Assembly (NCBI GenBank): GCA_011109175.1
Contig: RDEW01000047.1
Coordinates: 364,240-428,239 of the forward strand
Source of the DNA: Dicyema japonicum
Lineage: Eukaryota > Animalia > Dicyemida
DNA length: 64,000 bases
Direction of reading: 5' to 3'
The notes below the pieces were generated by a model. That model saw nothing but the letters and a program-made list of their open reading frames with translations, was not told where the DNA came from and ran no database searches. The translations under genes were made by a program, and so were the position numbers. Positions 1,791 through 63,156 of this stretch are shown one piece after another. The first letter of the stretch is position 1; every line of letters starts with the position of its first letter.

Positions 1791-2179
1791 AAAAATTTAA
1801 TTAATCAATATAATCTGTACTTTTATCTCTTCTATCAAGAAGATCGTAGCTGTCCAGAAAAGGACATACAGAGTGATAGAACAGTGGATTTCGGCTACAA
1901 AGGCTCAGCAACGACATTTCTGGAGACACTAATACGTATAAAATGTGTGTGACAGTTTTCGCTCTGTGTGACAGTTCTTCGTAATTTGTGTGATCTAAAA
2001 AGAGGAAATACGCTTTCAATTACGAGAGCTGTTTACTAGTTCATAACAGTTTAATTTTTTTTCTAAGAAATGAGTCAACTGTTAAGATTAGTTTACTTTT
2101 ATTTTTAAATTTGTACAAAAAAATATAGAAACAAAATTAAAATATTTATTTCAATTCCAACATAACATGTAAGTCGCGT

Positions 2180-5115
2180 GACAATAATTTCTCTTTTTTC
2201 TTTCTGATGGCGTCATTTTATCCACCTTGCTAAGGAGACGCTCAACTGGCATTCATAAATATCTTTTTTAATTGATCTAAAGAACTAAAAACTAAAGCAT
2301 TTTTGTGGTTGGTCGAATGGTTGCGTAACTAATCAAACTGGGGACATTTTAAAGAAAAGAGTTACACTGCCACATCCTACAAGGATGGACTGACAAGGAC
2401 GGACTGTATCTGTGTGGGAACGTCGAATCAAACCCCGGACCCCTAAAGATCATGCAAATAAATATNAATCATTTTTGTGGTTGGTCGAATGCCACGTAAC
2501 TAATCAAACTGGGGACATTTTAAAGAAAAGAGTTACACTGTCACATCCTACAAGGATGGACTGACAAGGACGGACTGTATCTGTGTGGGAACGTCGAATC
2601 AAACCCCGGACCCTTAAAGATCATGTAAATAAATATAAACGGGATCAAATGTAAAATTATCGAAGTCAAACCTTATGGGAAATTATCGGATTGACGTCCT
2701 TCTATTACAAGAATCCAAACTCATAAGTGCGAACACAACTCCAAAATTTCGTGGATACTCAGTTATTCGCAAAGATAGATGTGGAAAACTTGGGGGAGGC
2801 TTATTAACTATCATACGAAGCGGTATCCCTTATAAAGATATCAACAAATACATTTACAACCGCCCCCTAAACCATGACGTATCGAAGTTCTGGCCACAAA
2901 AATTCCAACTCCCAAGGTTACATTTTACTCTGATCAATTCATATCTGCCCATTCATCATCAGCCACTTGCCCTAAACTTTCGTCGATCAGCTCACTAAAG
3001 AACGTTCTTCTTTGCGGTGACCTAAATACAAAACACCCGCTCTGGCTGAGACGTCAGACGTCAAACAGGCGGGGAGACATGCTAATCGAAGACTTGGGAA
3101 TTTTTTGCATCTTAAACGACCCTGACTTTCACACAAGAACTTCCTCAAGACAAAATGATAAACCATCATCCGTTGACGTTTTAATCGTTTCTCCCCTTCT
3201 GGCCTCTTCAATTTCATGGAGCGTGAAAAACAAAACTATGAGAGATCATAGTTTCCTTACTTTGATAAATTATAACCTTGCTGACTGGCCAAGATTTGCG
3301 AGCTATATTGACATGCAGATTAAGTTATCAATACTACATGCTGCCTCATCACTAAACAACAGCATAAAGCAGTTCTCTTCGTTCATTCAAGAAGCCAGAA
3401 AATTATTTATTCCATGGGAGGACAACCGACAATCAAGCAATTCAATTCAGTAGCCAAACATTTAGTTAAAGAAACTATTTAAAGAAAAATAACATACCGT
3501 CGAAGGAGGATATAATAAGAATTCGTACACTAAACAAGGAGATTAACAAATATATCAGTAAAACAAACGAGAAACGCTGGACAGAACTATCAAAAGCCCT
3601 AACAGAAAATTCCTCAGTACAGAAGGTCTGGAACAAAATCAAGTCTATCAAAAGGTCTTTTGATGAATCGCAAAATAGGATATCATTACAACCAAACACC
3701 TTAATGAAATACTATTCTTCCATAGCACATTAATACCACTCCAAAGAAAACTAAGTACTCTTAAACAGAATAAAACCGAAAAGATCATACGTATGGACCA
3801 TTGTTACGGTAAAGGACGTCCATTGGGCAAGATCAAAGGTCCAAAACTCCAAAGCCCGAGGTAGACAATATTTCTACAACAGAACTATAGCATCTAGGAC
3901 CTCTTGCTTTAGATTTAATTGCCTACATATTCACAATATCAATAAATATGAACACTATTCCGGATGTCTGGAAGAGATCATACATCAAACCGATCTTGAA
4001 ANATTTAATTGATTACATATTCACAGTATCAATAAATATGAACATTATTCCGGATGTCTGGAAGAGATCATACATCAAACCGATCTTGAAGCCAGGAAAA
4101 TCCGAAAATGACCCCTTTTACTACAGACTAATCTCGATCCTATGTTCACTTTCCCGAATACTCGAAAGATTAGTTCTTCAAAATATCAAAGACTACATCC
4201 CGTCTCTCCCTTCCAACTTGGATTCCGGGCTAAACACTCCACAGCAACATACCTAACGTCTCTGTGCCAGTTTATTGCGGAGGGATTCAATTCCACTAAA
4301 CCACACCAACGAACAGTCTTGGTCTCTGTGATATAACAAAGGCTTTCGACACTATCGCCAGTCCTTTTTAATCTCTACATAAGCGACATGCCACAAACCT
4401 GTATTGAAAACTGCTTAATCCTCTTTTATGCCGACGATATCATTCTTGCCTCCAAAAACAGAAACATTCAATCAGCGACTCATTCTGCTCAACAAATGCT
4501 TGACAAGCTGGAACTATTGCTCTCGAAGCATCAGCAACAAAGTCCTCTGTCACGTTGTTTACCACTTACAATAGAGAGACAGCAAAAATCTTTATGAAGA
4601 ACTATTAACAAAACACCAAAGATTCTGGGAGTCACTTTTATCCGACATGTTGAGAACATAGTAACTTTTGCTCTGAGGAAAATGAGAATTTTAAAAGTGC
4701 TCTCAAAAACACTTAGAGACCAAATTGGTGGCCTTGTTACGATTTATAAACAATTTATCCGACCCACGATGACGTATACAAGTCCTTCGTGGGCAATGCA
4801 GATTTCACGATCCTCCTCATTGAAACTATCCGCAATCGAGGAGACCGAAATAAGGATAATTGGACCAGAACACAAAATCCAGCCCATTGAAAATTTTTTA
4901 ATCGAATTACAGCGGAAACTCTTAAAGGAGTCCATACACTATCGAAATGTCTACAATCATACAGAAATTTTGAGCCGATGACATGTCTAATGAAAAGAGC
5001 TGTCCAGGATTCTCGACCCCACAGGACTCGCCCTCTTCCTTGTCTGTTTTGGATCACTTAGTTGAGAACCTTTTATTTCTTTTCTTTGACCCAGTGATCC
5101 TGGAGGTAATAATGA
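2180..5115 (+). mobile_element. Near full-length, decayed single-ORF Ingi-like non-LTR retrotransposon (2A-APE-RT)
   Basis: 2A-like GLYLCGNVESNPGP at 2401-2442; APE motifs (LKIMQIN, LLQESKL, GYSVIRKDR, GGGLL, GDLN); RT motifs (WKRSYIKPILKPGK, YRLISILCSLSRILERL, FQLGFRAKHST, RTVLVS..KAFDT, FYADDI, YKQFIRP); 3' stem-loop at 5051-5100 and a TAAT tail. Many frameshifts and stops. Confidence 0.88.
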
Positions 5116-5601
5116 TTTCTTATTCCTTCATGTATATAGCTTAGATGTCAATGGGAGTACTCAAGCCCGCGGCCATTTAACGTCAATTCTTTTATAACAG
5201 TAACTCTCGGTTTTCTAAGAGCTTAAAATTTTTGAAAAAAATGTCTCAAACTACTAGTGGGTGAACACATTAATATTTCTAGATTTATGACAACATTATT
5301 TGCTTAGTCAAATAGCCTCTACAATGACACCGACGGTCTATGAAGCATTAAGACGGAGATTGCAAACAGCAGTCGACATCAAATATAATCACTATGACGT
5401 CACAAAATCAAAGATATCACATCCCTACATCCACGATACCCTATGGACTAACATATCTCGCACAACAAAGCTTAAATACTTCCTTCTACCAGCTCAACAC
5501 TACACATTGGGGAAATTCCATGGTAACCTAATCACCTTGGTAGCAGATATACTACCTAAATAGCACATACTTTGATTTCTAGCAAGTGAAGGTCTTAGAA
5601 T

Positions 5602-6609
5602 TCATTCTTTTTGAGAAGGCAAACAAAAATAAAGGTTAAAATCAGAGTGAACCACCAAAAAACGAATAACTCTGTCGTCCAGAATGCCTAAAACTCACAA
5701 AAACAGCCACTTGCAACTACTCTTTTAGGGTTTGTCTGATAGAAGCTTAGAAACTGCATCAATCTCGAAATATCCACGCGGACTGACCCACTCCTATAGC
5801 GTCCACCACTCACATCCAAAAATCCCCCTTCTCTCACAAACTACGCCAACCAGAATTGTCGAAAAAATCCAAATCCCCAAAACTAACAACCACGTGTCCG
5901 TCGACTCCACTTTCGGCCTCAAAATACATCCTCCCGTCGTCCTTCACGGAAATCATCTATGATGAGACAAAATCAGACCACGTGTGCTGAAAAGCTCTTC
6001 ATGTGATCCAATATTGTCCGAACGTCCTTAATTTTTGGAAATTCGATACTCATCTACAAATAACATAGAATAAACGTCAAATTCTATCAAATCGGGTTCC
6101 TCGAAATCTTTCCACCTGTTTGGAGGAATGAGGGTCACAGGGATGTCGTGGACAACATTTCTAACTCCGTTTTCGGCGTTCTAAAGTAAAAAGTGAGTAA
6201 ACCTTGAGCTCCTGTTCGGTGGAAAGACAGGTGGAATTGAGAGACGTGAGTTTTAGTTTTGTGATTCTGGCCTGTGTGCAGTGCTTGAGAGCTTGTTGCA
6301 GGTGGCCGAGGGAAATGTGGAAGTAAATTTCATTAAAGTCCCCAGTTATTCCCTCAAAAACGAATTCCTGGAAAATATTTTCCTGGAATGTCAAAATTTC
6401 ACCTACAGTGGAAAGTTGAGACCAAAGACAGACGCCCCCAAAGACCAGACTATCTGAGATTATAAAGTAAAGGGAAGAATTGCTTAGTCTGAGAACGCAC
6501 TTCTTGCTTATACTTTTCAGTGAATGAATTAGTTCTAAATAAATGTGAAATATTTACTGTAAAACTGAATCCCACATGAAATATCTGTTATTTTGGCGCT
6601 AAACTTCAT
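5602..6609 (-). CDS. HUS1: Checkpoint clamp subunit HUS1 (9-1-1 complex), seven introns of about 20-24 nt
   Basis: Spliced product MKFSAKITDISCG...KKCVLRLS..LYFIISD...GGVCLWSQLSTENIFQEFVFEGITGDFNEIYF...KLKLT...VVHDIPVTLIPPNRWKDFEEP...VRVDISRLMQFL...NPKRV...LYFCLPSQKE* is co-linear with human HUS1 as recalled. Confidence 0.92.
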
Positions 6610-6684
6610 AATTTATTATTTTTTAAAACAAAGTTTAATATTTATACATGCAATAAATGATAAAATTTTCCTAATCTAATTTAG

Positions 6685-8440
6685 AATCTCTCAAGGACAA
6701 CTCTAGATTCTACGAGGCTGTGAAACAGATGAAAAGAAAGAGACCCGATAATAATAAGAGATGACAAAGGAACGCAGATTGTGGACCAAAGGGAAGTGGC
6801 GGAAATTATCGCTGCCCACTTTGGAAAACTTTTCAATCCAAGGAACGACACTTTCATTCTAGAACGAGGGAAAATGGACGAGGAAATCACACCATATGAA
6901 GTTGAACTTGCGAGTTCCAAGTTGAAAAACAACAGGACTCCTGACCCCGACGGACTCGGNGAAAATGGACGAGGAAATCACGCCATATGAAGTTGAACTT
7001 GCGAGTTCCAAGTTGAAAAACAACAGGACTCCTGACCCCGACGGACTCGGTGGTGAATTCTCCATATATGGAACCCAAAAGCTGTATGAATGCATCGCTA
7101 GGATCCTGAATGAAATGTACTATTATGGTCACATGCTGACCCTGAGAGAGGGTATCTTGATACCTATACAGAAGGCGAATAAACCAAGATCTAAGGTGGA
7201 GAACTTCCGTCCGGTCATATTAATGAATTCACTTCGGAAAATTCTGGCGAACATAACATTACAAAGGATGGAAGGACGCTTAGATACTTTTCTGTCGCTA
7301 TACCACAGCGGATTCCGAAAAGGAAGATCTACTTCCGATGTTTTGTGGTCCCACAAGTGGAGATCTGCGGCCGTTCAAAAGTTCAAAATGTCTACAACCA
7401 TCTTGGAAAGTTTCCTAGACGCTTCCACTGTCAGAATGGCCACCACCCTCCTAGCTGATACTAAGCTCACTGTAAGAGTCGGAGGAGCCTTGTCTCGCCG
7501 ACTTGAGACGAGTGTTGGCACTCCACAGGGAGACCCATTATCACCTATACTTTTTGTCATATACGTTGAAGCTGCTTTACGAGAGTCAAAACCGATAATT
7601 GGTGAAAAGACAAACATTAGTGTTGTATGCTGACTACGTAGACTTTATTTCAAACGACAAAATACCCCTCACCCGCTTGATGGAAGAAGTGTCTGGAAGA
7701 CTAGCCGAATGGTTCCTAACAGTAAATCCGGACAAGACTGAGGTAACTGAACTCAAGAGGGAAAAAACAAGGACGGAGGAATACTGACGCAAGTGCAAAA
7801 AGCTTGGCTCTCTCCTAGGAGACCATGAAGACATTACAAGAAGGAAAACCTTAGCACAAATTGCCCTCTCCAGACTGAAGAACACCTGGCTTCACAAAAA
7901 GGGCCTTTACATTATAACAAAAACTCGATTATACAACTCGCTAGTGAAATCCATACTACTAAATAACGCTAGTACCTGGGCCTGCTCAAGAAATGAACTG
8001 AAGAGGCTTAATGCGTTTCATAGAGACCAACTACGGCATATGATGTTCGAAAGAAGTGATACGAGGATGTCATTTAATCTTTCTTATAAGAGGACGAAGA
8101 CCTCAGAAATTTCTAATGAGATTCTGGATACACGTTGGAGACTTTTCGGCCATATTTTACGACTGGACCTAGATGTCCCCGCGAACGTAGCCATGGAAGA
8201 TTACTTCATGTTGGAGGCCCCCCGCTTCCGTGATCGCCCAAGGACGACACTGGCAGTCGTTCTCGACGAGGACCTCAAAGAAATGGGACGGCATCTTGGA
8301 AGTGGAAAGGATCTTGACTGGTTGCGCACTGCGGCTTTGAATAGGAGGAAGTGGATGAAACTAACCAGTGATTTGCTAACTCGTGTTTACATGCTTTGTC
8401 AAGTCCTATGAAATAGCGATAAGTGCTTATAATAATAATC
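6685..8440 (+). mobile_element. 5'-truncated RTE-clade non-LTR retrotransposon (RT and C-terminus), frameshifted
   Basis: LKNNRTPDPDG, NFRPVILMNSLRK, HSGFRKGRST, VGTPQGDPLSPILF, YADYVDF, RWRLFGHILR, RPRTT motifs; (TAA)n tail at about 8430. Confidence 0.9.
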
Positions 8441-8552
8441 TAATTTAAGCTTTTCCTAAATAGAACCAGAATTTATTTAGGAAAATATAGCGATAAGATT
8501 ATTTTCATGATTTAATGTTATCCGCGTGGCGCCATGTAATGTTAATTGGTTG

Positions 8553-8845
8553 AAGTTTTCTGCTTGCTTGTCTGTTCCTTCTCTCTCTTCCTATTAGAGT
8601 GGCGTCATGTGATCCACCTGTCTAGGTGACGCCCAGTGCCAGGCCGGCACAAAAAAGGATCATTTGCTCTTCCCCACTCCACTGGAGGGGTTTCCACAAC
8701 TGCATGTAATGGACGTCTTACCTTTTATGCTAATTCCGGATGGACTCTGTTTCTGTAGAAGTGGAAACTGGATACACTTAATTAGTTGTTTACTTTAACT
8801 TCTTTCTCGGTGTATCCGGGGTTAATAATAAAAATAAAAAAATAA
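8553..8845 (+). mobile_element. Short non-coding bipartite retroelement (5' pseudoknot plus 3' stem-loop of the Ingi-like LINE)
   Basis: Homologous copies at about 51260-51765 (+), 49470-49663 (+, 3' part) and 16895-16966 (-, 3' tip). Shares the GGCGTC..ATCCACC..GGTGACGC 5' motif and the GGAT(A)CAC..GTG(T)ATCC-GGGGTTAATAA 3' end with LINE copies. Confidence 0.8.
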
Positions 8846-9059
8846 AAAATCAGAAAGTTGTGTATTAATGTTTGTAGCATAAGCGTCTAATCAGCCTGTT
8901 GTATGTGAATTGAGTCATCGCAGAGAATATATCGAATCTTTGTTTTGCATTTGTGTCTTAGTTGCCTTATAGTCGAAAAAGCTTGAGTTTCTGTCTCCAC
9001 AGATGATGAATAATACTAGATACTCTAGAATTATTTAAGTTTTTATCTATACCCACACC

Positions 9060-9330
9060 TTTCTGAGCATCTATGAGAATTCCTTGCTCACATCGATTCT
9101 GAAGACAGAACAAATCGATAAATGACCCATCGTCCTACCGCCAACCAGTCTCTATAAAATTAAAATTGAAGGTTTTAGAAAGACTCATACTAACATTGAT
9201 TTCCCCTGGTGAGGCTGGTCTAGGATTCGTCTCCAATTTTATCGCATACAACTTTAATACAAAAATCTCTTATGCACGGCTTTGGTGTCTTCAATATAAA
9301 AGCAAAAGTCCAACTAATAAATATGATCTT
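9060..9330 (+). mobile_element. Highly decayed RT fragment of a LINE
   Basis: Residual NDPSSYRQ / LKVLERLIL motifs. Confidence 0.5.
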
Positions 9331-9604
9331 TACGGTATTTATATTCAAACATATCAGATCCTTGGTGTCCATGGTGATGAAGATCGGTCAACAATGCCAA
9401 TTAGAGAACTTGTTGGTAAGTCGAAGAGAGTAAGACTCTCTACTCATATATTGCAAAGTGCCATGGTTTATAGAAGGAAATACCCTCTTTACGATCTTTA
9501 TTGGTTTGATAAAGCTGCTATCATTACCCTTGATGTGGCGCTTTGATGATTTCATACATAAGTCAACGAAGTCTTGATCAAAGGACTTTCTCAATGTTGT
9601 TCAC

Positions 9605-9850
9605 CTGGTGGAAGGTTTCACGCATCTACAATGCAGAAAGGGTTTGACGAGTGACGCCGTCATCAGTGGAAACTCACTGCGGAACTGGATTGTCTAGAAA
9701 GGACCCACACACAAGAAAAATAAAATAAAAGTGAAGATCATTCCTTGGTTCTACGAGTAGCTAAAATTAACTGTTCTTTACTTAAATAAAGTGTGTGTCT
9801 TGCCTATGCGAAGTTATAAATATTATGGCTCTCGTGAAAAGGCTATTAAA
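9605..9850 (+). mobile_element. tRNA-derived SINE family A, body and 3' part
   Basis: gaaggtttcacgcatcta...tgacgagtga..tcatcagtg..actgcggaac matches 63925-63997. The 3' part matches the reverse complement of 10350-10510. Confidence 0.65.
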
Positions 9851-10349
9851 AAACATTAAATCTCTCAAAGTTAATCGTCCTATCACTTGAAACAGATGAA
9901 ACTAGAAATCAAATTAAAAGTCAACTAATTGGTTCCTGTGGATGAAAATCAGTTTATTGACTAATCCGAGATAGCCTGATAATTTATACAAAATCTTAGT
10001 AGTTTAAGTATCCCAAACATATACAAACTTATCTTACGTTCCTGCACTAACCATAGACTCGTCAGGTCATCATGAAACACTCAAAAGATAATAAATTATT
10101 TAATAATAACAAACGCCTTCATTATCATCACTTAGACCGTAAAATATTCTTACAACAACAATCTCTTGGTTGTCTGAAAAAGTATCAGCTGTTGGGAGAC
10201 TCAACTGCATTCCCCTTGCGAATTTCCCTAATCTAAACAGATATACAACAAATATTATACTAATTTCTCTGTCTTCTCCACCAAAACAGATTAAAAAGGG
10301 GTTGCAGGTCCCTGCCTATTTCAACCTCCCACTTGTTGGTCTGTGATCA

Positions 10350-10512
10350 CTGAATAATAACAGCAATTTCGTGAGAGCCATGATATTTTTAGCTTCGCAT
10401 ACACAAGAAAAAAAACTTTATCTTTAGAGTTAAGAACAGATATGCTAACTAATTGTTGAATAGAACCAAGGAAATTTCAAACCTACTTTTTCTAATGTTT
10501 GCATGTGAACCC
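10350..10512 (-). mobile_element. SINE family A, 3' fragment
   Basis: Reverse complement shares ttccttggttcta, ctgttctt.act, tatgcgaag.ta.aaatat.atggctctc with 9740-9835, and aligns to 33015-33120. Confidence 0.6.
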
Positions 10513-10819
10513 TATAGACAATTACTTTTGATTGCGTCACTAGTCAAGCCAAGAAACTTCGTAGATTCGAACAGAAAGCATCTGAGTTTTGTCCTGAACT
10601 TGTGACACTGCGCCATTCTGGCGATCAGTGAGTTAGCTAAGAACATTCCTTTCTTAACTTTCGATACTGTGGCAATAAATAATCTATATATCTGAAATTT
10701 CATAATTTAGACTTGTTAGAATATACATTTCAATCAGTAATAACAAATTATCTTATGTCCAGTTTTTATGTTTTTCACTAATTTCCTTCAAAAAATTAGT
10801 TTAATTTCAACTATAATAC

Positions 10820-13590
10820 AACTGTTTTGGCTTGCATTCAGTATAATAACGTGGCGTCATGCGGTTCATCTGTTGTTGTGGTGGAGCTTAGTGCAAGTTC
10901 TGCATGGAAGATAACCGTTCGACTTTCCCTACCTTTCTGCAATCTTCAGAAGGGTGGCCTACCAACTCTCCCGTTTTCTCTTTACTACTTCTGTCTGGTG
11001 ATGTAGAACCTAATCTGAGACCCAACTGCACGTTGACTATTCTACAACTAAACGTAAATGAAATCCGCAATAAAGTATTGGATTACGATCCCTCCTATTC
11101 CATTTGAGAGTGGACATTGCCCTCATCCAAAAATCGAAGTTCTCTATAAAGTCCCCAACACCTTGTTTTCCTGGATATTGTGTACTTTGCAGGGACCGAA
11201 CAAGAAGTCTCGGAGGAAGATTATTGGCTATCGTTAAAGATGGGCTTAAATTCACGGATGTCACCCCTTCTGTATCTTCTTTCTGCGAAGGGGATCTTAT
11301 TCTGGAACAGATTTCTATTGAAGTTCTTTTTTCTTCGACGAGATGTTATACATTATGTAATGTCTATATCTCGCCTCAGGGGTCATGTACTATTTCCTAC
11401 ATCCCCAACCTATTGAGCCTGGGTGGACTAGAGAATCTGCTACTATGCGGAGACCTAAACGCCAAACATCCACTCTGGCTCCGGACTCAATTAGCCGACA
11501 GTCGCCGCGAATACATCTTTTCCCTGCTCAATGATCTGACTATCCTTAATGATCCGGACACCCACACAAGGACCCCGTCCGCAGAAGGGACAGTCCAACA
11601 TCCTCGGACCTGTCCCTCTGTTTTCCCTCTATGGCTGGATGTATTTCATCGTTATGGTTTCTCAAGCGACCATAACCCGATTGTGTTGAGACTTAAAAGG
11701 CCTATTTGTTCACCGTGTTGTTCTACAAAGTTTAAAAATTACTTGAAAGTTGACTGGCAAGGTTTCAGGACATATGTGGACATTAGTCTTCTTGACCTTA
11801 CTATGGTTTATTGTACAGTAGAGAAGACGGCCAAGATTCTGTCCGCTATCATTCTGAAAGCTGATAAACTATTTATACCTGTCGCCTCTTACAAGAAGTT
11901 CAATCCAAGATTATCATCACAAATTGTGTCACTCATCAAGAAACGAGATGCGCTGAAGAGGCAAAGAACACAGACCAATAACTCTTTCTACTCCATACGT
12001 TTACTGAATACCAAATTATCTGAGCTTATCCGAACTAACAACAGACTCAAATGGAGCTCCCTAGTTGGACGATTATGTCACAAAAAACTCTTGTGCCACT
12101 TTTTGGAAAATGCTAAGAAGGATCAAAAGCCTTATCAATGAGAAAGACCGCGGAACTGAGGCCGTTACCNAAAAGCCTTATCAATGAGAAAGACCGCGGA
12201 ACTGAGGCCGTTACCCGCAACGCTTCGGAACCCAGTCGCAAACTCGCAAACAAGATTATGAAGTACTACGTATCGATCAGCCATAAAAAGTTTTCTCGTT
12301 CTACATTTGTTGAACGGCGCCGGCCACAACAAGAACCATATTCCACCTTCTTCACCCCCGATGATGTTGACAAGGCTATTAAATTGCTATGTCCCACTAG
12401 TGCTTGTGGTCCCGATGGTATTTGCATTATTCACCTCAAACACCTTGGACCTCAGACACGGGCCATACTATCAAGACTGTACAATGACTCTATCAACTAC
12501 CATACGCTACATAATATATGGAAAAACTCCCTGATTACGCCAATCCTAAACCCCAGAAAACCAAAAGACGTTCCCTCTTCTTACCGCCCCATCTCAATAA
12601 TTTGTGTTTTATCAAAAGTACTGGAAAAGCTTGTGTTAATGCGCATCTTTCCTGTTCTACATCTACCAGAGTTTCAACATGGTTTCAGGGCAGACCGTTC
12701 TACAACGACTCATTTGGGTTCTATCTCCCAGTTTATTACTGACGGCTTCAACATGAGAACACACTTACGGACGGCCTTAGTATCCATCGACATACAGAAG
12801 GCTTTTGATTCTGTTCCGAGGAAACTCCTAACGCATAAGATTTTTAACTCGAACTTACACCCGAACATCAAGCTATGGCTGGAAAATTTCTTAACTGAAC
12901 GACGCGGAAGGGTCCGGATCGACAAAACCACTTCAAAATCAAGACTACTCCCTAATGGGGATCTGCAAGGCTCCCCTTTATCTCCTCTCCTTTTAAACCT
13001 ATTTCTACATGACCTACTTACTACTAATGACCAGGACACTATGTTTATATCCTATGCGAACGACCTAATTATCGCTACAAGAGATAAATCTCCTTCCATG
13101 ATAGTAGCAACTGTTCAGACACACCTAAACCGAATTTGTGACTGGCTATCTGCAAATATGTTAGTGTATCAGGATCCATGTCTCAGTTCACATTATTCAC
13201 TACGGACAGAAGGTTTAATTGTGGGCCTGAGATATCCATCGGAAATATTCCCATCCCTTCTACGCGGATCTAGAAGATCCTTGGTGTAGTTTTTAACTCT
13301 TTGTTGACGTTCTCGAGTCACGTGGAGGAGGTGCTTGCCAAGGGTCTTCGGAAAAAGAACATTCTGAATGCGATGATAAAGAAGAGCCTTTTCCCCAGGC
13401 CGCTTGCGTCAGCAAGGTCTATCAACAAGTCATCGTACCAACCATTGAATATGCCTGCTCCGCCTGGAGGTTTGCGATTCCCCTTTCGAGAGTGGACCGT
13501 TTGAACTCCCTCAGGCAAGAATTATGCACCACACGGACATCCCTATTGGCGACGTTGAAAAATGGCCAGGGTTTCCTAAGTTCCTGCAAG
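10820..13590 (+). mobile_element. Ingi-like non-LTR retrotransposon (5' pseudoknot, degenerate 2A, APE, RT), 3' end missing
   Basis: LLLLSGDVEPNLRP followed by LTILQLNVNEIRNK; APE ORF 11104-12141 (CGDLNAKHPLW, SSDHNPI); RT ORF 12138-13289 (ACGPDGI, SYRPISIICVLSKVLEK, FQHGFRADRST, DIQKAFDSV, LQGSPLSPLL, SYAND). Confidence 0.9.
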
Positions 13591-13599
13591 GAATTGCGC

Positions 13600-14780
13600 T
13601 AGCGACATAATACGTCACCTGCATAATCTAGACTCATCATTTCTGGAATGTCGGATAAAAACAAGTTGAACAATGCAGGGGACAGTGGAGATCCTTGAGG
13701 TACACAGCTCGGTAATAGGCGAGATGTTTAATTATGACTGCTTCACCATACTCCCCACGTCGTCAGGAAAGAAAATCGCTCAGCCAAGGTTTTACATTCG
13801 GATTAATAGAAGTCTCAAAAACCTTTTTTGTTAACAGAGGCCTTGAGATCGAGTCGAATGCTTTTTGAATGTCCACGGAGAGCAAGACTATTCGCATATA
13901 GGTTTTTGATGTGTTGAAACCATCGGTGATAATTGGGAGACAAATCCTAGATGCGTCGTAGTTGAGCGACCTTGTTCGAAGCCATGTTGGAAAGCAGGTG
14001 ACAGAAGATCCCGGAAAATTATTTTTAGAACAAACTTTTCCGACATTTGGACATTGTGAATGTATGAGAGGGAGATCGGGCGGACGAAGCAGAATCATCT
14101 TTTGGCTTTTTTGTTTTCAGCATAGGTCGGATCAAGGGATTCTTCCAGATATTTAAAAGAACATGTGTGCTGATAGAATAACTGTAAAAGTCCGTTAATA
14201 CAACCTTGGCACGTAGTCCAAGATGTTTAAGTTTGATCATCGGGGTCAAGGGCAAATGGAATCACGTGCAGTAAAGTACTAGAATCACCAACCTCAACAT
14301 GTTTGAAAAGGTAATTGTGAGTGTGAGTTTTGGATTGCAGTACCCCATCCGTACGGAACGATCGAAGTCCTTGTGGCTTATGAGGACGTAGTGTTTTATT
14401 AGTTTATTCACGTGATCTTAGGTAGATTGTAGGTAGATTGTCGGAGACAGGACTGCCTCCTCATTGATATGACTGTTGATACTTCATAGCGTTTTCCATT
14501 TCGATGGCGAAAAGGATATGCTACAGAGATCTGTTCCAAGGTATCAAACCCCTTCACCGTGAATACAATTCGGCTCCTGATAATTGTTGAAAGTCCTCCA
14601 CCGCATTCACCATGTCCTTTCAAATAATGCGGACTCGTAAGGTACAATCCGTATTAGACTGTTCCAAGGTATCAAACCCCTTCACCGTGAATACAATTCG
14701 GCTCCTGATAATTGTTGAAAGTCCTCCACCGCATTCACCATGTCCTTTCAAATAATGCGGACTCGTAAGGTACAATCCGT
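13600..14780 (-). mobile_element. Decayed Ingi-like LINE fragments (APE and RT)
   Basis: IITDGFNTSKTYMRIVLLSVDIQKAFDSI, WKNPLIRPMLKTKKPKDD, GGGLSTIIR, VPQGSPLSP on the minus strand. Confidence 0.8.
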
Positions 14781-21099: not shown

Positions 21100-23600
21100 T
21101 TTACAGTTTCTATATTTTACTACAATAATTTTTAAATCACGTGCAGATTTTTGTTCATTTTTTGCTTGTCTTAAAGTTATCTACACCTTTTATGGGCTTA
21201 AACTACGATACAAAAGTTGAAATTGCTAAACTTCTTTCAAAAAAGAAGCATTCAATTCGAAAACTCGCGAGAATGTTTTACACAAGTATCGGAACAATCT
21301 CTAGAATCAAGAGAAACATTGTTCCATTCACAAAAATGGACAGATTTATTCAAATGCAGAGACTTCAGAGTCAGTCACTAGTGAAAAGCATAAACTTTTG
21401 GATTCAAAAGTGTTGGATGTATTTCAACACCTAAGAAAACAAAACGTTCTCATCTCCGGACTTTAATCCAATAATCGGTATTATTGTAATTCTTAAAATC
21501 ATTTTATTAAGGCTGAAATTCGCATCTAGAATCTTATTCAAAATTTTAAGGCTTCAAACGGATGGTTAGAAAAATTCAAATCAAGACATGAACTTAAGTT
21601 CAAAACTTTGTCTGGAGAAAAAGTTTCAAGTGACAGTTCCATGATTGATGAGTTTTTAATTCAATTTAATAACAAAATTGACGAATATGGAAAACAAAAC
21701 ATTTTCAATTGCGACGAAACGTGTCTTTTTTTCAGACATAGTCCACTGTCTTGCTTTGCTGCAGCTATACAGGAGAAAAATTAGACCCTTTAATTATGGA
21801 AAGTTTTGTAATCTAAAATGCTTCAAAAATTTCCTCCCGTCAATCCATAATGTTGTTTATTTGTCATCCAAAACTGCATGGATGACAAAAGATGTGTTTA
21901 GATTTTGCCTTCATAGGATTAATGAACATTTTTTATCACAAAATCGGAAAATTATTCTGCTATTGGACATTGCTGGGCCTCATAATAATCTGGAATTCTC
22001 CAAAAGATGTGTTTAGATTTTGCCTTCATAGGATTAATGAACATTTTTTATCACAAAATCGGAAAATTATTCTGCTATTGGACAATGCTGGGCCTCATAA
22101 TAATCTGGAATTCTCTAACATAGAATTATTTTTCCTACCTAAAAATACAACTCCGATACTTCAGCCACTGGAGTTTGGAATTATCAAATCTTTCAAAGAC
22201 CACTATTTTACATCTTTAATAGATTTTTTATGTTTTACTGACCATNATCTTTCAAGGACTACTATTCTACATCTTTAATAGATTTTTTATGTTTTACTGA
22301 CGATCAAGATTTTTTTATTGAGTCCCTAAAAAAGATAAATTTACTTCATGTGCTATTATTGATTTCTGATGCATGGAAGGAGGTTTCATCAGAAATTATT
22401 ATTAATTGTTGGGAAAAAGTGCTTAGCGAACATCAACCCGAGGATTTTATGGTCATTTCATCAATGAAAAAATTGAAAAAGCTATCGAATATGTTTTAGA
22501 AGAAAATGACTGAGTCAGAGCATAATTTTTATAATGTAATTGAGGCTGAATATGTAACTATAAGAACAGCCATTGATAACATAAATTTATTTATTTATTT
22601 TATTTAACCCCAAGACCACCAGGAAATATAGGTCAAAACTAACTAATTAGGTGATCCCAGCTTCCAGCAACATCCGGATTCTTTTTAATTGGTCTTCTGG
22701 TGATCAAACCGCACCCCAGAAGCGTCTTCTCTTGCTTCTGCAAAGGAATTCTATCGGTGTGCACTTTTTTATTCCCGACCGAAATTCCTCTGCATGGGCC
22801 ATTTTTTCCTTGAATGGGTTTCCCAGTTCTTTGCAGAAACGTAGGAAACCCTGGCCATTTTTCAACGTCGCCTCATCAGAAACGAGGTCGCCAATGGGAT
22901 GTCCATGTGGTGCATAATTCTCCGCCCGAGGGAGCTCAAACGGTCTACTCTCGAAGGAGGAATCGCAAACCTCCAGGCGATGCAGGCATATTCAATGGTT
23001 GGTACGATGACTTGTTGATAAACCTTGCTGATGCAGTCGGCCAGTGGGAGAGGGCTCTTCTTTATCATCGCATTCAGAATGTTTCATTTCCGATAACCCT
23101 TGGCGATCACCTCCTCTACGTGACTCGAGAACGTCAACAAAGAGTTGAAAACTACACCAAGGATCTTCTGGGTCCGTGTAGAAGAGATGGGAGTGTTTCC
23201 GCCCATCTTTAAACTTTCTGACCGTTGTGAATAATGTGAACTGAGACTTAAATGCTGATACTCATAACGTATTTGCAGATAGCCAGTCACAAATTCGGTT
23301 TAGGAGTGTCTGAACAGTTGCTACAGCCATAACATAAATAAAGTTGAGGAAAACAATTTAAATATGTTGCTGGATTGTCTTAAAGATTTTTATTATTTTA
23401 GAAAAATATTCATGCGCAATTTAAAATTTAAATATGGCTATGGACAAAAAATTACTGATTACTTTAAACAATGTTAATTTTCTGTAAATTCTAAGGTTTT
23501 TAGTCAACGAAGTATTTTTATATACTCAATAATAACAAATTTTTGTACGACTATGGAGTAACTTCTATTTTTGGAACATTTGTTGTTCCAAATGTAGGTT
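21100..23600 (+). mobile_element. Decayed pogo/Tigger-family DNA transposon (CENP-B HTH and DDE_1), interrupted by a LINE
   Basis: SIRKLARMF..SIGTIS, FKASNGWLEKFKSRH..FKTLSGEK, NIFNCDET, KTAWMTKDVF, RKIILLLDNAGPH, FFLPKNTTPILQPL.FGIIKSFK. TIRs not resolved. Confidence 0.88.
22587..23328 (-). mobile_element. 5'-truncated Ingi-like LINE (same subfamily as 10820-13590) inserted in the pogo element
   Basis: Near-identical to 13100-13590; 3' stem-loop at 22612-22658 and (TAAA)n tail; 11-bp TSD ataacataaat at 22576-22586 and 23329-23339. Confidence 0.9.
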
Positions 23601-24761: not shown

Positions 24762-25540
24762 ATTTATTTATTTAATAACCCTAAAAGGGAACACCAAGAA
24801 AGAAGGAGTAAACCAACTAATTAAGTGACCCCGGTAGGTTTCCACAGGATCGAGAGGTTTTTCTTATGTTCCTACAGAGTACCCACGGCTGTCCTGAATA
24901 GACGACGATCATCTTTCATCAGAGTTTGAAGAGGAGTGGGTTTTTTCCTCAAATTTTGTGTATTTGAAGCTTCTTGCCTTGAATGGAAGAAACGACTTGT
25001 TTCTTGGCCAGACAGACCGATGAAGTCGGAGCCATTATTTTTCATTGCGGCGTGGTCAAACATTGAGGGGAAAAAATCGGGGGTAGATTCGTTAGACGTG
25101 CCAGTTTGCCAATTCGGGAATATATCTTGAGTGGATTTAATATCAAAGCTCCATAGGCCCATGAGGCACAAGCATACTCTATCATCCGTTTTAGGAATTG
25201 ATTGAACAAGACGACAGCGCATTCCTGTGACGCCCTGGACTTTAAGAGCGGTTTGATTATATTTAGTTAACTGAGACCATTTGTCAAAACGTTTATCACA
25301 TGTCTGAGAAAATGTCATCAAATGGTCAAATGTCAATCTCAGGATAGTTGGACGAATCTGTAATGGTGAGGAGTCTCTTTAAATGTGTAAATCCAGTGTA
25401 TGTTTTTCTTTCCTGTTCGTGATGAAGATTGTATACGTTGATTTATCCCTGGATGTGGAGAGACGATTCAACTTCAATCAGGCTCCCAGTACGTCAATAT
25501 GTGACTGAAGCTTTGAATTTGCTGTACCCACGTATTTATA
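24762..25540 (-). mobile_element. 3' fragment of an Ingi-like LINE within the minisatellite
   Basis: Minus-strand ggggtcac-ttaattagtt..gtgttccc stem-loop and (TAAA)n tail; decayed RT C-terminal coding (ILGLTFDHLMTF). Confidence 0.7.
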
Positions 25541-27749: not shown

Positions 27750-28780
27750 CCATTTCTTATTAATGTCATTAGTCATCCACCAAGCTTTATCTTTCTCTCT
27801 TTACGGATAACGGAGTATCCGGGAAAGGTTGGGGTTCGTATGTTTGCTTTGTCTTTTGGACTAGAGCAAAATCAATTTCATTTCTATTGAGTAAATTGTT
27901 TCCTATTCCGTTAACCTGGACCAGCCCTGTAGAACTCTCCTCTTCAATGTATCATGTCTGTTGCGTGGGAATTAAAATTTAGAAGGCTGTCGTACTTGAC
28001 TCCAAGGACAGTGGGGGACCTTGTCACTGGAATCCGAGTGGGACCAATAAAGATACTCGGTTCATCCTTGGAACGACGGTCCGAAGTGAAAGTGGAACAG
28101 ATAAACTTGGTTGCAGAAATCGTTAGTCGATTGCCAACAATCCAATCGTGGAGAGTGTTCAATTTTGTTTGAGTTTTAAGGGATGCGACTTGCGTCGAGC
28201 GGTTCTGTATTGCAATGACTACATCGTCTGCGTAGGATAATAGCAGGGAATCTTCGTCTTTATTATTAGGTTGGTCGTGTAGGAATAAGTTGAATAGAAT
28301 TGGTGAAAGTGGAGACCCCTGGGGTACCCCGTTCGGTAGTAATCGTGATCTAGATCTGAGATCACCACTGACTACTCTTCCATGTCTTCCAGACAAAAAG
28401 TTGGCCAGCCTTAATTTTACATTCGGACGAATATTAGTAGAAAATATTTTTCCAACCAGGATTTTCCTCGAAACAGTGTCAAAGGCTCTGTTGATGTCAA
28501 TAGAAACCAAGATTGTGCGTTTTTGAGGCAGGGAAAGGGTGTTAAAACCGACGGCAATGAACTGCGATAGGGTTGCCAAGTATGTAGCGGTGGACCTACC
28601 GTGGAGGAAACCATGTTGAAATATAGAACGTGGAAGATACGGAATAATGACTGATAATACAAGTTTCTCCATAATTTTTGACAGTGTGCTGGTAACGGAA
28701 ATAGGCCTGTAGGAGGCAGGTTCTGTCTTTGGTTTCCCAGCCTTCAATATCTGTTTGATGATAGAATTCTTGGCCAATAA
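27750..28780 (-). mobile_element. Ingi-like LINE fragments: RT core (27944-28777) joined to an APE start (27750-27925)
   Basis: SYRPISVTSTLSKIMEK, FQHGF, RTILVSIDINRAFDTV, GVPQGSPLSPILF, SYADD; PTFPGYSVIRKER..LGG. Confidence 0.85.
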
Positions 28781-41721: not shown

Positions 41722-42600
41722 CAAAGACTCAGGGTAAAACCAAACTAATTAATCCTGTGATCCTGAAGCCTTCTAGTAGAACTCTCATCCAAGTAATGTG
41801 ATCTAGAGGATATTGTCCAGGAAGTTGAGGTCGATGACAGAACTTGTCATCAGAAAGCGAAATTTTCTCCCGGTGGAATGAATAGTTGGATGTTTTTGAA
41901 TGCCAGGCAGGCATTAGCCGTCTCCTGAGTAGGTTGGCTCTGATGACGCTACCAGAAGGTAGGAAGAAAAATTTTCAATCAAGTAGCCTTATAGCAGCAG
42001 CATCAACTGCCAGAAGAGATTAGGTAAATGTGATAGTTAGTAACAACCACTGAATTTTTTAGTGACTTTTGCAATCCAAGTCTTTGCAAAGTGCATTGCT
42101 GAGCAGAAAAGACTCATTTTTTGTAAGGGAACATTTAGGAACTAACAACCACTGAATTTTTTAGTGACTTTTGCAATCCAAGTCCTTGCAAAGTGCATTG
42201 CTGAGCAGAAAAGACTCATTTTTTGTAAGGGAACATTTAGGAACCGATGGATTTCTAGTAGTTTAAGTTAACAATCTGAGAGATTTTATCATGATATCGA
42301 CTTTAATGTGGAATATTGTTATTTTATCAGCAGAAAGTGCTTAATAATGGAAGGGAGAGTCTAGAGTGACATGATGGTTCCTCTATAGCAGTAGTCTTAC
42401 GATCATGAAAGATAACTTGATTCGTCATGAGTCCTGACAAAATTATAATCATCCTAAGACTGTAAGTTGATAGCATGTAATCGTTTATTTTTGATTTTTC
42501 TATAATCACAGAATAAATTACCGACGTTTCAGAGCATGCTTGCTGAGCACAGATATGGAGTAAATATTTCGAGAAAGCAATTCATATAAGCATCCAACCA
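41722..42600 (-). mobile_element. Probable decayed 3' part of an Ingi-like LINE
   Basis: Minus-strand ggatcacagg-attaattagtttgg..ccctgagtctt resembles the family 3' stem-loop; coding signal weak. Confidence 0.4.
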
Positions 42601-48190: not shown

Positions 48191-49469
48191 CTTTAAAATT
48201 TCTGTTTCATTATTGGCATAAACAGTTTTATTTTTTCTTTCTTTTTCGTTAGTTTTATGTAAGTTTGTGTTTTCATGTGTTGAGTTCCGCAGGCCGCCAC
48301 AATTGCCAGGATGGCATCATATTCGCTCCCCTACAAGGTCATTTTTGGAAAAGTTCCCACGACTGTGTTATCGGTCCAGAAGACTTTGTCCGGATAGCTT
48401 AGGTGATTCCAGAACTCGTCTCCAGAGAGCGAAATTGTCTCCTGGTTGAATGAATAGATAGATCCTTTTGAATGCAAGCCAGGCATTGGGATTCTCTTGA
48501 GTAAGGTGGATCCAATAACGCCATCAAAGGGAAGAAAGAGAAACCTTCAATCATGCAGCCACATGGCTCCACATGGGGCTAAAATGAAAATATCGAGCAA
48601 CAAGGAATGTTTTATGGACTTAATAAATAATAAACAAATAATTANGAGCGAAATTGTCTCCTGGTTGAATGAATAGATAGATCTTTTTGAATGCAAGCCA
48701 GGCATTGGGATTCTCTTGAATAAGGTGGATCCAATAACGCCATCAAAGGGAAGAAAGAGAAACCTTCAATCATGCAGCCACATGGCTCCACATGGGGATA
48801 AAATGAAAATATCGAGCAACAAGGAATGTTTTATGGACTAAATAAATAATAAACAAATAATTAACTGAAAATCTGAACTTAGAAGTGTTATCCTTTGCTT
48901 TAAACAGATATTATTGCCAACTACCAGTCTTGTCCTAATTCTTTCAATTTGTGGGGCTGAAAAATCCAAACTTGAATTATTACTGTATTCGACGATTCCT
49001 TATTTTAAAAATTCAATTTTCAAATGTCTCCTTAATCGGTCATTTTGACCATAAATAGATAAGAAAAGAAGACTTTTTATTTCCATGAAGTGATGTGAAC
49101 ATTTGGTGTAGTACAAGTGCATCTCCAACTCAGCTTTCAGATCTCTGTTTGTTGATTATTGCTGAGAAGTTAATATGACTGAACATACTAGCAGATATTG
49201 GGTTTTTTCACCAGATCTTCATTCTATTGGATATCACTTGAGAATTCACCATTCACTCTCATTTGCGAGGATGGCTAACCTCATTATTTTCCTGAAGACT
49301 TAGAAGTACTCTCTTGTCATTATCAAATTTTCACTCATGTTAACTGCCAAATGTTTTGTCCATAGTTCAGTGGTCTTCACCTTGTTCAATTTTCATCGCA
49401 ATCATTTGGACCACTCACCATGAAGTTAGCTATCCCCTTTTTTGAATAGATTCTTCTGTAACTTGGGTA

Positions 49470-49663
49470 CCTCGCTCTCCCCACCTCACTTGATAAATTC
49501 TCACAACTGCAAGGAATGAACTTCTGCCACCTTTTATGCTGGTTCTGGAAGTATTTGTGTGACATCGGAAAGACTCTGTTTCTGTGGCAGCGGGAACTGG
49601 ATACACTTAATTATTTGTTAACCGTTAACTTCTTTCCCGGTGTATCCGTGGTAATAATAATAA
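49470..49663 (+). mobile_element. Diverged 3' part of the bipartite short element
   Basis: cacaactgca..ccttttatgct..gactctgtttctgt..actggatacacttaatt..ggtgtatcc..gtaataataataa. Confidence 0.75.
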
Positions 49664-50091
49664 CACCACCAATCTAACTGTTAACTAAAGTACAGCACTA
49701 TAAGAGATCTATTGGAAGGATGTTATGATTAAAACTGATAACAAACAAGTTGAACACTTGAATTTCATTATTGATTTCATATTCTTAAGTGATTTTAAAT
49801 CAAAGAAATACGCGGCCTTTGGGGATTGTTTATACTTCGTCCCAATCGCCTTTGAAACATGGAATGATTGGGACAAAGTAAAAGAGTAGTCAATTCAATC
49901 GGAAATGCGGTTGCTTTATAATTCAGAAACCCTCCCGAACGGAGATAGTTTTAACACCACCTTTTAATGGCCATCGTCCACCGCGATCCCTACTGTCCCT
50001 TACCAGGTGTAGCATGCCTTGTTGCTAATGTATTTGCCTCAGTTTATGTATCTAATGTAGCTATAAATTTGAGCTAATCTCACTGCTTCCT

Positions 50092-51259: not shown

Positions 51260-51765
51260 TAAGTTTCTGTTTGTTCGTCTGTTCCTCCTCTCTCTTCCTA
51301 TTAGAGTGGCGGTATCTGATCCACCTGTCTAGGTGACGCCCAGTGCCAGACCAGCACGAAAAAAGATCAGTTTGTGGATGAACGTTAACATTAGATTTGA
51401 AGGTCGTGGGTTCGAATCCGAAAGATGGAGTTTTCAGCTAAGGTCAATTTTTGTCAAACAGACCCACTCGTGAGGCGACGAGTCCTTCTGACACGACACA
51501 GTAGTTAAAAGGGATTTTCCTACCTTTCTCCTTGACCAAATCCTCTGATGAAGATTGGATTATGAAAAATATTCCGCTGTTCNGATCATTTGCTCCCCCC
51601 ACTCCACTGGAGAAGTTTCCACAACTGCAAGTATGGACGTCTTTTACCCTTTATCTCGATTCCGGATGGACTCTGTTTCTGTAAAGGTGGAAACTGGATA
51701 CACTTATTAGTTTTTTACTTTAACTTCTTTCTCGGTGTATCTGGGGTTAATAAATAAATAAAAAC
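51260..51765 (+). mobile_element. Second full copy of the bipartite short element, interrupted at about 51375-51583 by a tRNA-like SINE segment
   Basis: 51260-51374 and 51584-51765 align end to end with 8553-8845. Confidence 0.8.
51375..51582 (+). mobile_element. tRNA-derived SINE-like segment (family B)
   Basis: B-box context aggtcgtgggttcgaatcc; A box degenerate; no complete cloverleaf. Confidence 0.45.
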
Positions 51766-61400: not shown

Positions 61401-62480
61401 AGACTAGTCAACCTGGTATGTTTGGTAGCGTGTGGCATGAAGCCCTCCTATCAAGACTAGCAGCTGCTGATATACAAAAAAAACTTTTCATATGGATAAA
61501 GAACTTTCTAACAGGTCGGACTTCCGAGTACGTGTTGGAGCAAATATATCAAAAGATATCATACTGAAAAGGGGAGTTCCACAGGGTTCTGTCTTGAGCC
61601 CACTTCTGTTCAACGTGTTCATGTCAGACTTCCCAATTCCACCGGAAACGAACACCAAATTATTGATATACGCTGATGATATTCTGATTACGGATACGTA
61701 TGGGAAATCAACTCTATCGGAAAGAAGAATCAAGTCATTCATTGAACAAGTGCAGGACTGGTGCACCAAGAGAAGGGTGAAACTATCCACTGAGAAGTCC
61801 AGCTACTTGAGAGTCAGTCTCCTACGGAGACATCGTACTCAGCCCTACTCACTTAGTATTCCAAAAGGAAATTCACTCGCTACCTCGGGATAGTTATCGA
61901 TGGGGAAGGTTCCTTCATGGAGGACATCAGACGAAGAAGGAAGAAGCCGCTACAAGCGCTTTTCTGTACAAGCAAGTTATTCATAAGCTTGGAGACCTTC
62001 TTGTTTATCTTCATGATAATCATTCTGCCAGAGCTACTATATAAATGNCGAAAGTAAATTCACTCGCTACCTCAGGATAGCTATCGATGGGAAAGGTTCC
62101 TTTATGGAGGATATCAGACGAAGAAGGAAGAAGCCGCTAAAAGCGCTTTTCTTTACAAGCAAGTTGTTCGTAAGCTTGGAGACCTTTTTGTTTATCTTCA
62201 TGAGAATCATTCTACCAGAGTTACTATATAAATGCGAAGCATGGTTTTTCTCTCGCCAGAGATAGAATTATGTTACTTATGGAAAAAACAAAAAAGTCAG
62301 CAATAAAGTTGGCCTTGGGGAAAAAGTTATTTGATGTCTTCAGTACGGGAGAAGACAAGATTCTTGCACCGGTTACAGATCTTCTCATGGTGGATGCGAA
62401 TATCGTACACGTGGGAATAATGATTGACTCATGAGACATTGAATAAGGGAAACGTCGGATATAGGGACGTTCCTGGACGA
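58460..62480 (+). mobile_element. Two-ORF Jockey/I-group LINE, decayed: gag-like ORF1 and APE-RT ORF2
   Basis: Three knuckles CYNCQQVGHFAYQC / CFRCAGEHDTLRC / CVNCG; APE LKIVLVNSRSL, VVNETK, VGDLNAK, GSDHIP; RT ALGHD, SYRPISLICSISKIVER, GVPQGSVLSPLLF, IYADDI. Confidence 0.9.
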
Positions 62481-63156
62481 ATTTTTTTCAGCCAAAATTT
62501 TGATTAATTTGGAAAGGCNGAGTTCATCGATGCCACACAAGTCCACTTAAATCCAGAGGAAATGGAAGAATAAATACCTCTCCAAAGAATGTTATGTGAG
62601 AGAGGAAATGATTTTTATGACGTCATTCTAACGCTGAAAATCATCTGTGACAGGTGGGTCACGTGACACCATGCTAGTAGTGTGGGAAGAGAAAAAACAT
62701 AACAAGGTAAGAGAAACTTTCGACCAGGTAACAAGGAAGAATTGAGTCTTCATTTTTCTAGGCATGACATCCTAACTAGTTAAACAGATTTTTGGTAATC
62801 AGAAGCAAGAGTATGACGTTATTGGGTTATGAAAATTATAAAGACAAACTACCTAAACAGTTGTCCTGCATTTATGAAAATTTTAAATAATTTTTATATC
62901 AGAAAAGAGTGTCCTATAATTAGCATACTTTTTCGTGATGTTAGCTGTAGCTCGATGATAAGTACGTCAAGAGAGACATACCTGTAGTTAATTTGATGAT
63001 AGTTTCTTGGTAGGCGGACAGAATTTGTAGGGAAGGGCGGTTAATGGTAGTTGAAGAAAAATAAGTTATATTTTTATTTATTTATATTAAAATAACATTA
63101 TAATTTGAAAATAAATAAATTGATAATAAAAATTTTCGAGCACGTTTCACCGGTTA

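Follow-up and report, generated by a model that had tools for sequence, protein, structure and literature searches.

An HDV-like, probably non-cutting 5' pseudoknot and a 2A peptide in a LINE and short-partner system of the dicyemid Dicyema japonicum

The trypanosome retrotransposon pairs L1Tc/NARTc and ingi/RIME each combine a long interspersed nuclear element (LINE), whose single open reading frame (ORF) encodes an endonuclease and a reverse transcriptase (RT), with a 5' fold resembling the hepatitis delta virus (HDV) ribozyme and an in-frame 2A peptide before the endonuclease (PMC3185411, PMC3383444, PMC5814959). Each LINE is accompanied by a short partner without an ORF, in which the two ends, 5' and 3', are retained. 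The ribozyme and 2A design has been described together for L1Tc (PMC5814959), and our literature search for the combination returned Trypanosoma cruzi only, with no animal report. Here we analyse a window of 64,000 nt from the dicyemid Dicyema japonicum, a tiny animal that parasitises octopuses (contig RDEW01000047.1, positions 364,240-428,239, forward strand), in which a first-pass annotation had recognised LINEs with a short partner and likened them to L1Tc/NARTc. That likeness is apt, as the HDV-like fold, the N-terminal 2A and the bipartite partner all recur (PMC3185411, PMC5814959). Our best explanation, to which we give a probability of roughly 0.7, is that the window holds two dead copies from a Dicyema-specific radiation of compact single-ORF endonuclease-RT LINEs and two copies of a short derivative, which would be copied in trans, and that the 5' pseudoknot common to both would be kept as an RNA structure.

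Parts of this design are known from other elements. Vingi LINEs are, like those of Dicyema, compact, with a ~1000-aa single ORF (993 aa as described) for endonuclease and RT and no RNase H (PMC3708506, PMC13708176), and they too have bipartite derivatives, with pieces of their 5' untranslated region (UTR) reused in short interspersed nuclear elements (SINEs) (PMC5786205, PMC13708176). In contrast to Dicyema, 2A is undetected in Vingi (PMC3708506), and our literature search turned up no account of Vingi elements with an HDV-like fold. RTE, Ingi, Vingi and R2 all have bipartite ORF-less derivatives (PMC5786205), and trans-mobilisation set-ups for Vingi and RTE use both 5' and 3' UTRs (PMC13708176). 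The presence of 2A in animal single-ORF LINEs has already been published: CR1, L2, Rex1, Crack and Ingi-1_AC elements (Odon et al. 2013), molluscs included, share with Dicyema an N-terminal 2A before the endonuclease in a single ORF, in an account that leaves ribozymes unmentioned and links 2A neither to structured 5' RNA nor to non-autonomous partners (PMC3708506). The short internally deleted elements (SIDEs) of R2 resemble the Dicyema short element in keeping a 5' HDV-like ribozyme fold and a 3' RNA module, which is protein-binding in R2 (PMC3414825). R2 itself has a restriction-like endonuclease, is specific to ribosomal DNA and carries a ribozyme that demonstrably cuts the co-transcript, whereas the Dicyema elements are dispersed and of the apurinic/apyrimidinic endonuclease (APE) type. 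In the stringent-type LINE/SINE pairs UnaL2/UnaSINE1, reportedly described by Kajikawa and Okada in 2002, a 3' stem-loop and short tandem repeats are said to be recognised by the LINE RT. The Dicyema elements likewise carry short tandem repeats behind a 3' stem-loop, but UnaSINE-type SINEs have tRNA-derived RNA polymerase III (Pol III) heads and the head of the Dicyema short element is LINE-derived.

The architecture can be read from intact relatives elsewhere in the genome (67,542,437 bases in 377 contigs, 328 kb of the 67.5 Mb being read at sequence level; pattern counts cover the whole genome). A genome search with the RT gave 7803 first-look candidates, among them young intact families whose members are ~3.03 kb long with an ORF of 1030-1037 aa. 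Family B (1037-aa ORF, L061) must be young, since its copies are 98.8-99.7% identical across ~3.03 kb; two copies of family C (1030-aa ORF, L062) are 99.65% identical. Pfam finds endonuclease and RT only in these two ORFs, with RNase H absent. Families A, B and C have a canonical 2A, GDVExNPGP with P, T or Q at the variable position, right before the endonuclease; it is in frame, follows a hydrophobic tract and fits the pattern D(V/I)ExNPGP, the window copies reading NVESNPGP and NLRP. Near the 5' end of each LINE lies a nested double pseudoknot of 65-72 nt with HDV-ribozyme topology (hereafter the knot), preceded by a leader of 9-18 nt ending AGCGTG; a leader ending TTAGCGTG is common to all families. 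In each family an AUG stands directly 3' of helix P1 (GGYGTC) and opens a frame that runs into the 2A (open from AUG to 2A in L041, L058, L062 and L063), so that most of the knot is predicted to be translated. From this start, 52-59 codons ending with the 2A precede the endonuclease-RT.

The head of these LINEs also contains words of possible significance as DNA. The P1 and AUG region of one copy (L045:3509-3578, minus strand) reads GTGACGTCATG, a perfect palindrome resembling the cAMP response element (CRE; TGACGTCA), and the P1 region of most LINE families is one mismatch from TGACGTCA. CGTG is the core of the downstream promoter element (DPE) of L1Tc Pr77 (PMC5814959), and a DNA-level promoter role for the CRE-like and CGTG words is possible. 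LINE insertions are frequently arranged head to tail, one LINE beginning immediately behind the (TAA)n or (TAAA)n tail of the next (in the region of L037:3816-3901, upstream of 220 in L041, and at L061:3250-3440), which suggests a preference for A/T microsatellite targets.

Evidence for the knot comes from an alignment of 22 Dicyema instances to the HDV-topology nested double pseudoknot. Pairing is possible in 84.6% of cells, compared with 33-45% when the 3' partners are slid, and the covariation score is 0.31, compared with 0.04-0.13 for slid and 0.18 for shuffled alignments; none of 500 shuffles reached it. Three pairs of the P2 pseudoknot helix are changed on both sides, with CGGUU/AACCG, UGGCU/AGCCA, UGGUU/AACCA and UGAUC/GAUCA as variants between families, and P4 is likewise changed on both sides between families. 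Covariation thus backs the predicted fold of P1, P2, P3, P1.1 and P4. A first, loose HDV descriptor matched thousands of places and was discarded for a strict one (C[G/U]AA in J4/2) with a shuffle control, which is satisfied by 8 of 26 regions upstream of a 2A and by 44 of 1040 shuffles. Family A fails the strict descriptor because it has U in place of the catalytic C, and the outside relative L073 is missed through limits of register and length.

The short element has no ORF. Its ~330 bp comprise a LINE-type 5' terminus, a complete knot ~80 nt in, a 3' stem-loop and a tail, and its head resembles the LINE 5' terminus through P1, the AUG and the start of P2. In its own knot the AUG that adjoins P1 has UGA as the very next codon. 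The first-pass annotation had rightly described the copy at 8553-8845 as ORF-less with the 5' motif and the 3' stem-loop, and its true start lies further upstream, at ~8521; the second copy that it had reported is real, 5'-truncated and interrupted by a 207-bp insert. Genome-wide, there are ~2003 first-look candidates, and identity to the window copy (itself 100%) is 95-97% among 40 scored copies. Mean pairwise identity is 96%. Counted with at most 3 mismatches (reversed-pattern controls gave 0), the element yields, from 3' to 5', 980 3' ends, 751 knots, 708 junctions and 453 heads, and such a fall is the signature of 5' truncation in target-primed reverse transcription. Exact flank repeats of at least 9 bp (10-17 bp) border 9 of 18 full-length copies, as against 15 of 330 mismatched controls (4.5%). 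From these sequence features (no ORF, LINE-type ends, target-site duplications, 5' truncation and dispersal), we class it as a bipartite ORF-less LINE derivative of the RIME, NARTc or SIDE type.

Between the 5' target-site duplication and the head, several copies have 5-22 variable nt (L004, L005, L008, L011, L017, L021, L024, L028, L030). In some copies these junction nucleotides duplicate a piece of the head (TAGCCGCGTG, for instance); template jumping, untemplated addition or initiation 5' of the head may explain them. A second family of short elements (SINE2 type) has the same two-part head, knot and 3' hairpin, as well as a decayed 2A-like remnant recognised by eye, and its sequence points to an origin by internal deletion.

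The 3' module is uniform in its pairing: across 21 ends from 6 families, the 9-bp stem keeps 8-9 of 9 pairs in every instance, and the RNAalifold prediction contains all 9 of these pairs, with a compensatory change in 4. In the LINEs, the 5' strand of the stem encodes the last codons (G-I-T), the loop opens with the stop codon, and the stem is followed by GGGGUUAA in RNA (GGGGTTAA) and then by a (TAAA)n or (TAA)n tail. The short-element stem has an inserted A-U pair (GGAUACAC/GUGUAUCC). The last 74 nt of the short element are closest to the family B 3' end (57/68), its knot is ~78% like those of families A and D, and its modules are ~78-84% like several families, family D being the LINE family nearest to it. 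The expectation that both modules would map to one autonomous consensus was not borne out: in the 328 kb read, the ends are LINE-type and ~80% like several families, and the short element does not trace by internal deletion to one identifiable autonomous element. A pattern search for a LINE joining the short-element knot to a 2A found none, 14 of 14 matches being short-element copies. By 3'-end sequence, family B is the best current candidate partner.

In the mechanism that we propose, the LINE RT would recognise the 3' stem-loop and tail of the short RNA and copy it in trans by target-primed reverse transcription, which would account for both the target-site duplications and the 5' truncations seen among the copies. 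The 2A would release a knot-encoded leader peptide from the enzyme, and selection would keep the knot as a cis-acting RNA structure. With the start codon inside a selected knot, the first ~20 codons would be dictated by RNA structure and then shed. The knot may serve in ribonucleoprotein assembly or 5'-end handling, in start-codon presentation or in RNA stability, and its cutting would not be what sets where the transposition template begins. The Dicyema system probably works much like L1Tc/NARTc, from which it differs by an internalised, probably non-cutting knot that holds the start codon, by a 3' end made of a stem-loop and a microsatellite, (TAAA)n, rather than poly(A), by the lack of RNase H and by its animal host. 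The L1Tc ribozyme comprises nt 1-77 and cuts at +1, whereas in Dicyema the fold is preceded within the copies by 9-18 nt in the LINEs and by ~80 nt in the short element, and this upstream sequence is inherited.

The position of the knot bears directly on whether it could be an active HDV-like ribozyme that trims upstream RNA and sets the transcript 5' ends of LINE and short element, in the manner of L1Tc (PMC3185411). We consider this unlikely, even though the nested topology covaries, the strict descriptor finds more regions than expected from its shuffles, and a C follows P4, before a GAA/UAA-rich J4/2, at the catalytic position in families B, C, A2 and the short element. In a close outside relative on a TARA scaffold, L066, a canonical HDV-like ribozyme even occupies the very 5' end (P1 GGUGU/ACACU, L3 UCCCCGU, J1/4 GG, J4/2 with CGAA, P2 GAGACC/GGUCUC), with G1 abutting flanking (TA)n and a 2A 89 codons on. 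Dicyema copies, however, do not begin at G1. Two family B copies bounded by target-site duplications (GAATGGTCTGAA and ATCGTCAAAAA) start 18 and 9 nt upstream of it, and a 33-mer across the predicted cut is found 708 times against 751 for the knot core, so that the upstream 21 nt are kept by 708 of 751 short-element knots and at most ~6% of the copies could begin at G1; 453 keep the head ~80 nt upstream as well. Since copies retain sequence 5' of the predicted cut, ribozyme cleavage does not set the transposed 5' end. The core also departs from the canonical one: the catalytic position is U in family A, P1.1 is U-A/G-C instead of two G-C pairs, and J1/4 reads CA. Rfam HDV models found no ribozyme in the window at gathering thresholds, nor in the short element or outside relatives in E-value mode, a weak and uninformative negative because the canonical L066 fold was missed too. 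Judged by its sequence and by where copies begin, the knot is probably non-cutting.

Some points weigh against our explanation. The catalytic C and the L066 ribozyme mean that some cleavage could still take place. The knot structure was derived from the same sequences in which pairs were counted, and related copies inflate the pair statistics. The search found no autonomous LINE with the short element's knot or GGAUACAC stem, the assignment of a partner depends on ~84% identity over 68 nt, and we infer transcript ends, translation start and 2A activity alike. Other accounts of the short element fare far worse. As a classical Pol III SINE with a tRNA, 5S or 7SL head it would have a typical length at ~330 bp, and the second window copy does contain a tRNA B-box-like word, GGTTCGAATCC; this word, however, lies in the 207-bp insert, outside the element proper, where ARAGORN finds no tRNA and which may be a piece of another repeat of tRNA origin. 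The element itself has no significant Rfam small-RNA match, its head matches LINE 5' ends, and its internal TTTT runs would terminate Pol III; these runs and the lack of a small-RNA head argue for a bipartite LINE derivative. A mere segmental duplication of two copies without target-site duplications is ruled out by ~1000 dispersed copies that have them, and we give this pair of accounts almost no weight.

The proteins closest to those of the LINEs are marine metagenome sequences with 41-47% identity over the RT, and 23 of 120 homologues have an N-terminal 2A; a PDB search with the RT returned only L1 ORF2p and R2 (E ~1e-12 to 1e-7). Among these relatives, L068 has an AUG after P1, and L073, which bears RNase H and a 2A, has on visual inspection a 5' HDV-like fold. 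In a FastTree phylogeny of the homologues, built without named reference elements, Dicyema families A, B and C are monophyletic within an RNase H-less clade rich in 2A carriers, and the neighbouring clades bear RNase H, one of them with 2A. The pattern fits a Vingi/Ingi-like relation, though it does not prove one. The hallmarks of L1Tc/ingi in Dicyema (2A, HDV-like fold, bipartite partner; PMC5814959), these RNase H-bearing neighbours and L073 would suit placement in the Ingi clade proper, as direct relatives of trypanosome ingi/L1Tc. We find this improbable, since Pfam detects no RNase H after the RT, the tails after the stem-loop are (TAAA)n or (TAA)n rather than poly(A), the size of ~3.0 kb and ~980-1040 aa fits Vingi at least as well (PMC3708506, PMC13708176), and a 2A is found in other clades too, namely CR1, L2, Rex1 and Crack (PMC3708506). 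The Vingi-type features (a single ORF of ~1000 aa, endonuclease and RT, no RNase H, bipartite derivatives) are all present in Dicyema and are not exclusive to Vingi.

In the window itself (Table 1), where the two LINEs are called LINE1 and LINE2, the endonuclease and RT domains seen at first pass are supported by Pfam and tblastn, but both copies are decayed and their ORFs broken. The GGCGTC motif near the 5' ends of the LINEs and short element and the 2A-like peptide 5' of the endonuclease are in place, the latter decayed in LINE2. The conserved 3' stem-loop is present in LINE1 and the short element; LINE2 breaks off at 13593, where it meets an inverted LINE fragment (13593-14498), and so has no 3' end and no stem-loop. 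The LINE1 stem-loop has a 34-nt loop with the stop codon at its start, and the LINE1 coding region is shattered into ~100-aa ORFs. The LINE2 ORF is split by a frameshift beside the n at 12171, which is flanked by a 45-nt duplicate. Single n characters occur at 2466, 3993, 12171, 51583 and 62518, with duplicated sequence flanking the first four (45 to ~165 nt at the first three); we read these as gap-closing artefacts of assembly, which would account for false frameshifts and for a false second 2A in LINE1. The features first described are real, with coordinates and ORF integrity corrected. As to their interpretation, the partner system holds, given the LINE-type 5' and 3' modules, target-site duplications, 5' truncation and ~1000 copies, while a 5'-end-defining ribozyme and, in the sequence read, a single parent are not supported.

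Table 1. Features of the LINEs, the short element and their relatives (window positions unless a locus is named).
Feature	Position	Strand	Remarks
LINE1	2174..5113	+	decayed copy, family D
LINE1 5' CGCGTG head	2175-2180	+	then pyrimidine spacer
LINE1 GGCGTC motif	2209-2214	+	knot remnant starts, G1 at 2209
LINE1 2A CGNVESNPGP	2413-2442	+	assembly duplicate 2584-2613 around n 2466
LINE1 endonuclease	~2672-3414	+	
LINE1 RT	~3470-4873	+	
LINE1 3' stem-loop	5050-5101	+	strands 5050-5058 / 5093-5101; UGGAUCACU / AGUGAUCCU
LINE1 tail start	5102-5113	+	
Short element, full length	8521..8845	+	8-nt deletion in head
Short-element head	8521-8552	+	conserved, CCGCGTGGCGCC... / CCGCGTGGCGCCATGTGG...
Short-element pyrimidine-rich spacer	8553-8600	+	
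Short-element nested double pseudoknot (predicted)	8601..8662	+	GGCGTC 8601-8606; P1 GGCGUC/GACGCC, P2 UGAUCC/GGAUCA, P3 ACC/GGU, P1.1 UG/CA, P4 GUGCC/GGCAC, A-rich J4/2
Short-element body	8663-8768	+	
Short-element 3' stem	8769-8777 / 8810-8818	+	stem-loop 8769-8818
Short-element stem sequence			GGATACAC
Short-element GGGTTAATAA and A/T tail	8819-8845	+	
LINE2	10841..13593	+	decayed, 3'-truncated copy, family A
LINE2 knot	10853-10917	+	GGCGTC 10853-10858
LINE2 AUG	10859-10861	+	same frame as decayed 2A
LINE2 decayed 2A SGDVEPNLRP	10994-11023	+	
LINE2 endonuclease	11083-12120	+	Pfam, tblastn
LINE2 RT	12249-13593	+	Pfam, tblastn
SINE2-type knot remnant, third	41886-41953	-	
SINE2-type knot remnants	48458-48525, 48677-48744	-	within 48458..48744
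Diverged relative of short-element 3' module	49474..49668	+	older, 71% identity, stem GGAUACAC/GUGUAUCC
Second short-element copy	51260..51765	+	5'-truncated, without head
Insert in second copy	51377-51583	+	207 bp, ends at n
Decayed relative of short-element 5' module	62595..62739	-	old, 65% identity
Second short-element family (SINE2 type)	L020:2563-2775		~215 bp, target-site duplication AAGGCTCTCTAA

Further LINE fragments lie at 13593-14498, already mentioned, and at 22653-23200, 24851-25525, 53784-54349 and 60940-61845, and an RT fragment at 27950-28777 (minus strand) has 90.6% protein identity to the young family B. The GC content of the window is 31-44% in 2-kb bins. Just 5' of the short element, the stretch 7900-8440 is highly repeated in read-derived contigs and carries ORFs at 6965-7633 and 7944-8411; read-derived contigs over 7900-9500, in which an empty-site allele was sought, break at the repeat.

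The published D. japonicum assembly (67.5 Mb, 377 scaffolds, GC 36.7%) contains 49% repeats, and its description of transposons names nothing past "LINE-1 ORF2" copies (PMC6736024). The elements described here help explain part of this repeat content in a very small animal genome, and with them the L1Tc/NARTc design of HDV-like 5' fold, 2A and bipartite partner, so far a trypanosome one, extends to an animal. What the abundant ORF-less partner retains indicates the RNA parts needed in cis, which bears on the use of compact single-ORF LINEs such as Vingi, L2 and RTE with templates flanked by 5' and 3' UTRs. The proposed shedding of knot-dictated codons also offers a concrete reason for the presence of 2A in single-ORF LINEs. 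More tentatively, and with the odds in our view against it, the HDV-type ribozyme of an old marine-animal LINE group may in dicyemids have become a non-cutting, translated knot that holds the start codon and is needed in cis for retrotransposition, not just for translation, as the ORF-less partner would show, with the 2A shedding the knot-encoded peptide; this LINE group would span RNase H-bearing and RNase H-less forms and possibly take in the Ingi/Vingi lineage to which L1Tc belongs. If that were true, the module of ribozyme, start codon and 2A would be one ancient functional unit and not a trypanosome peculiarity.

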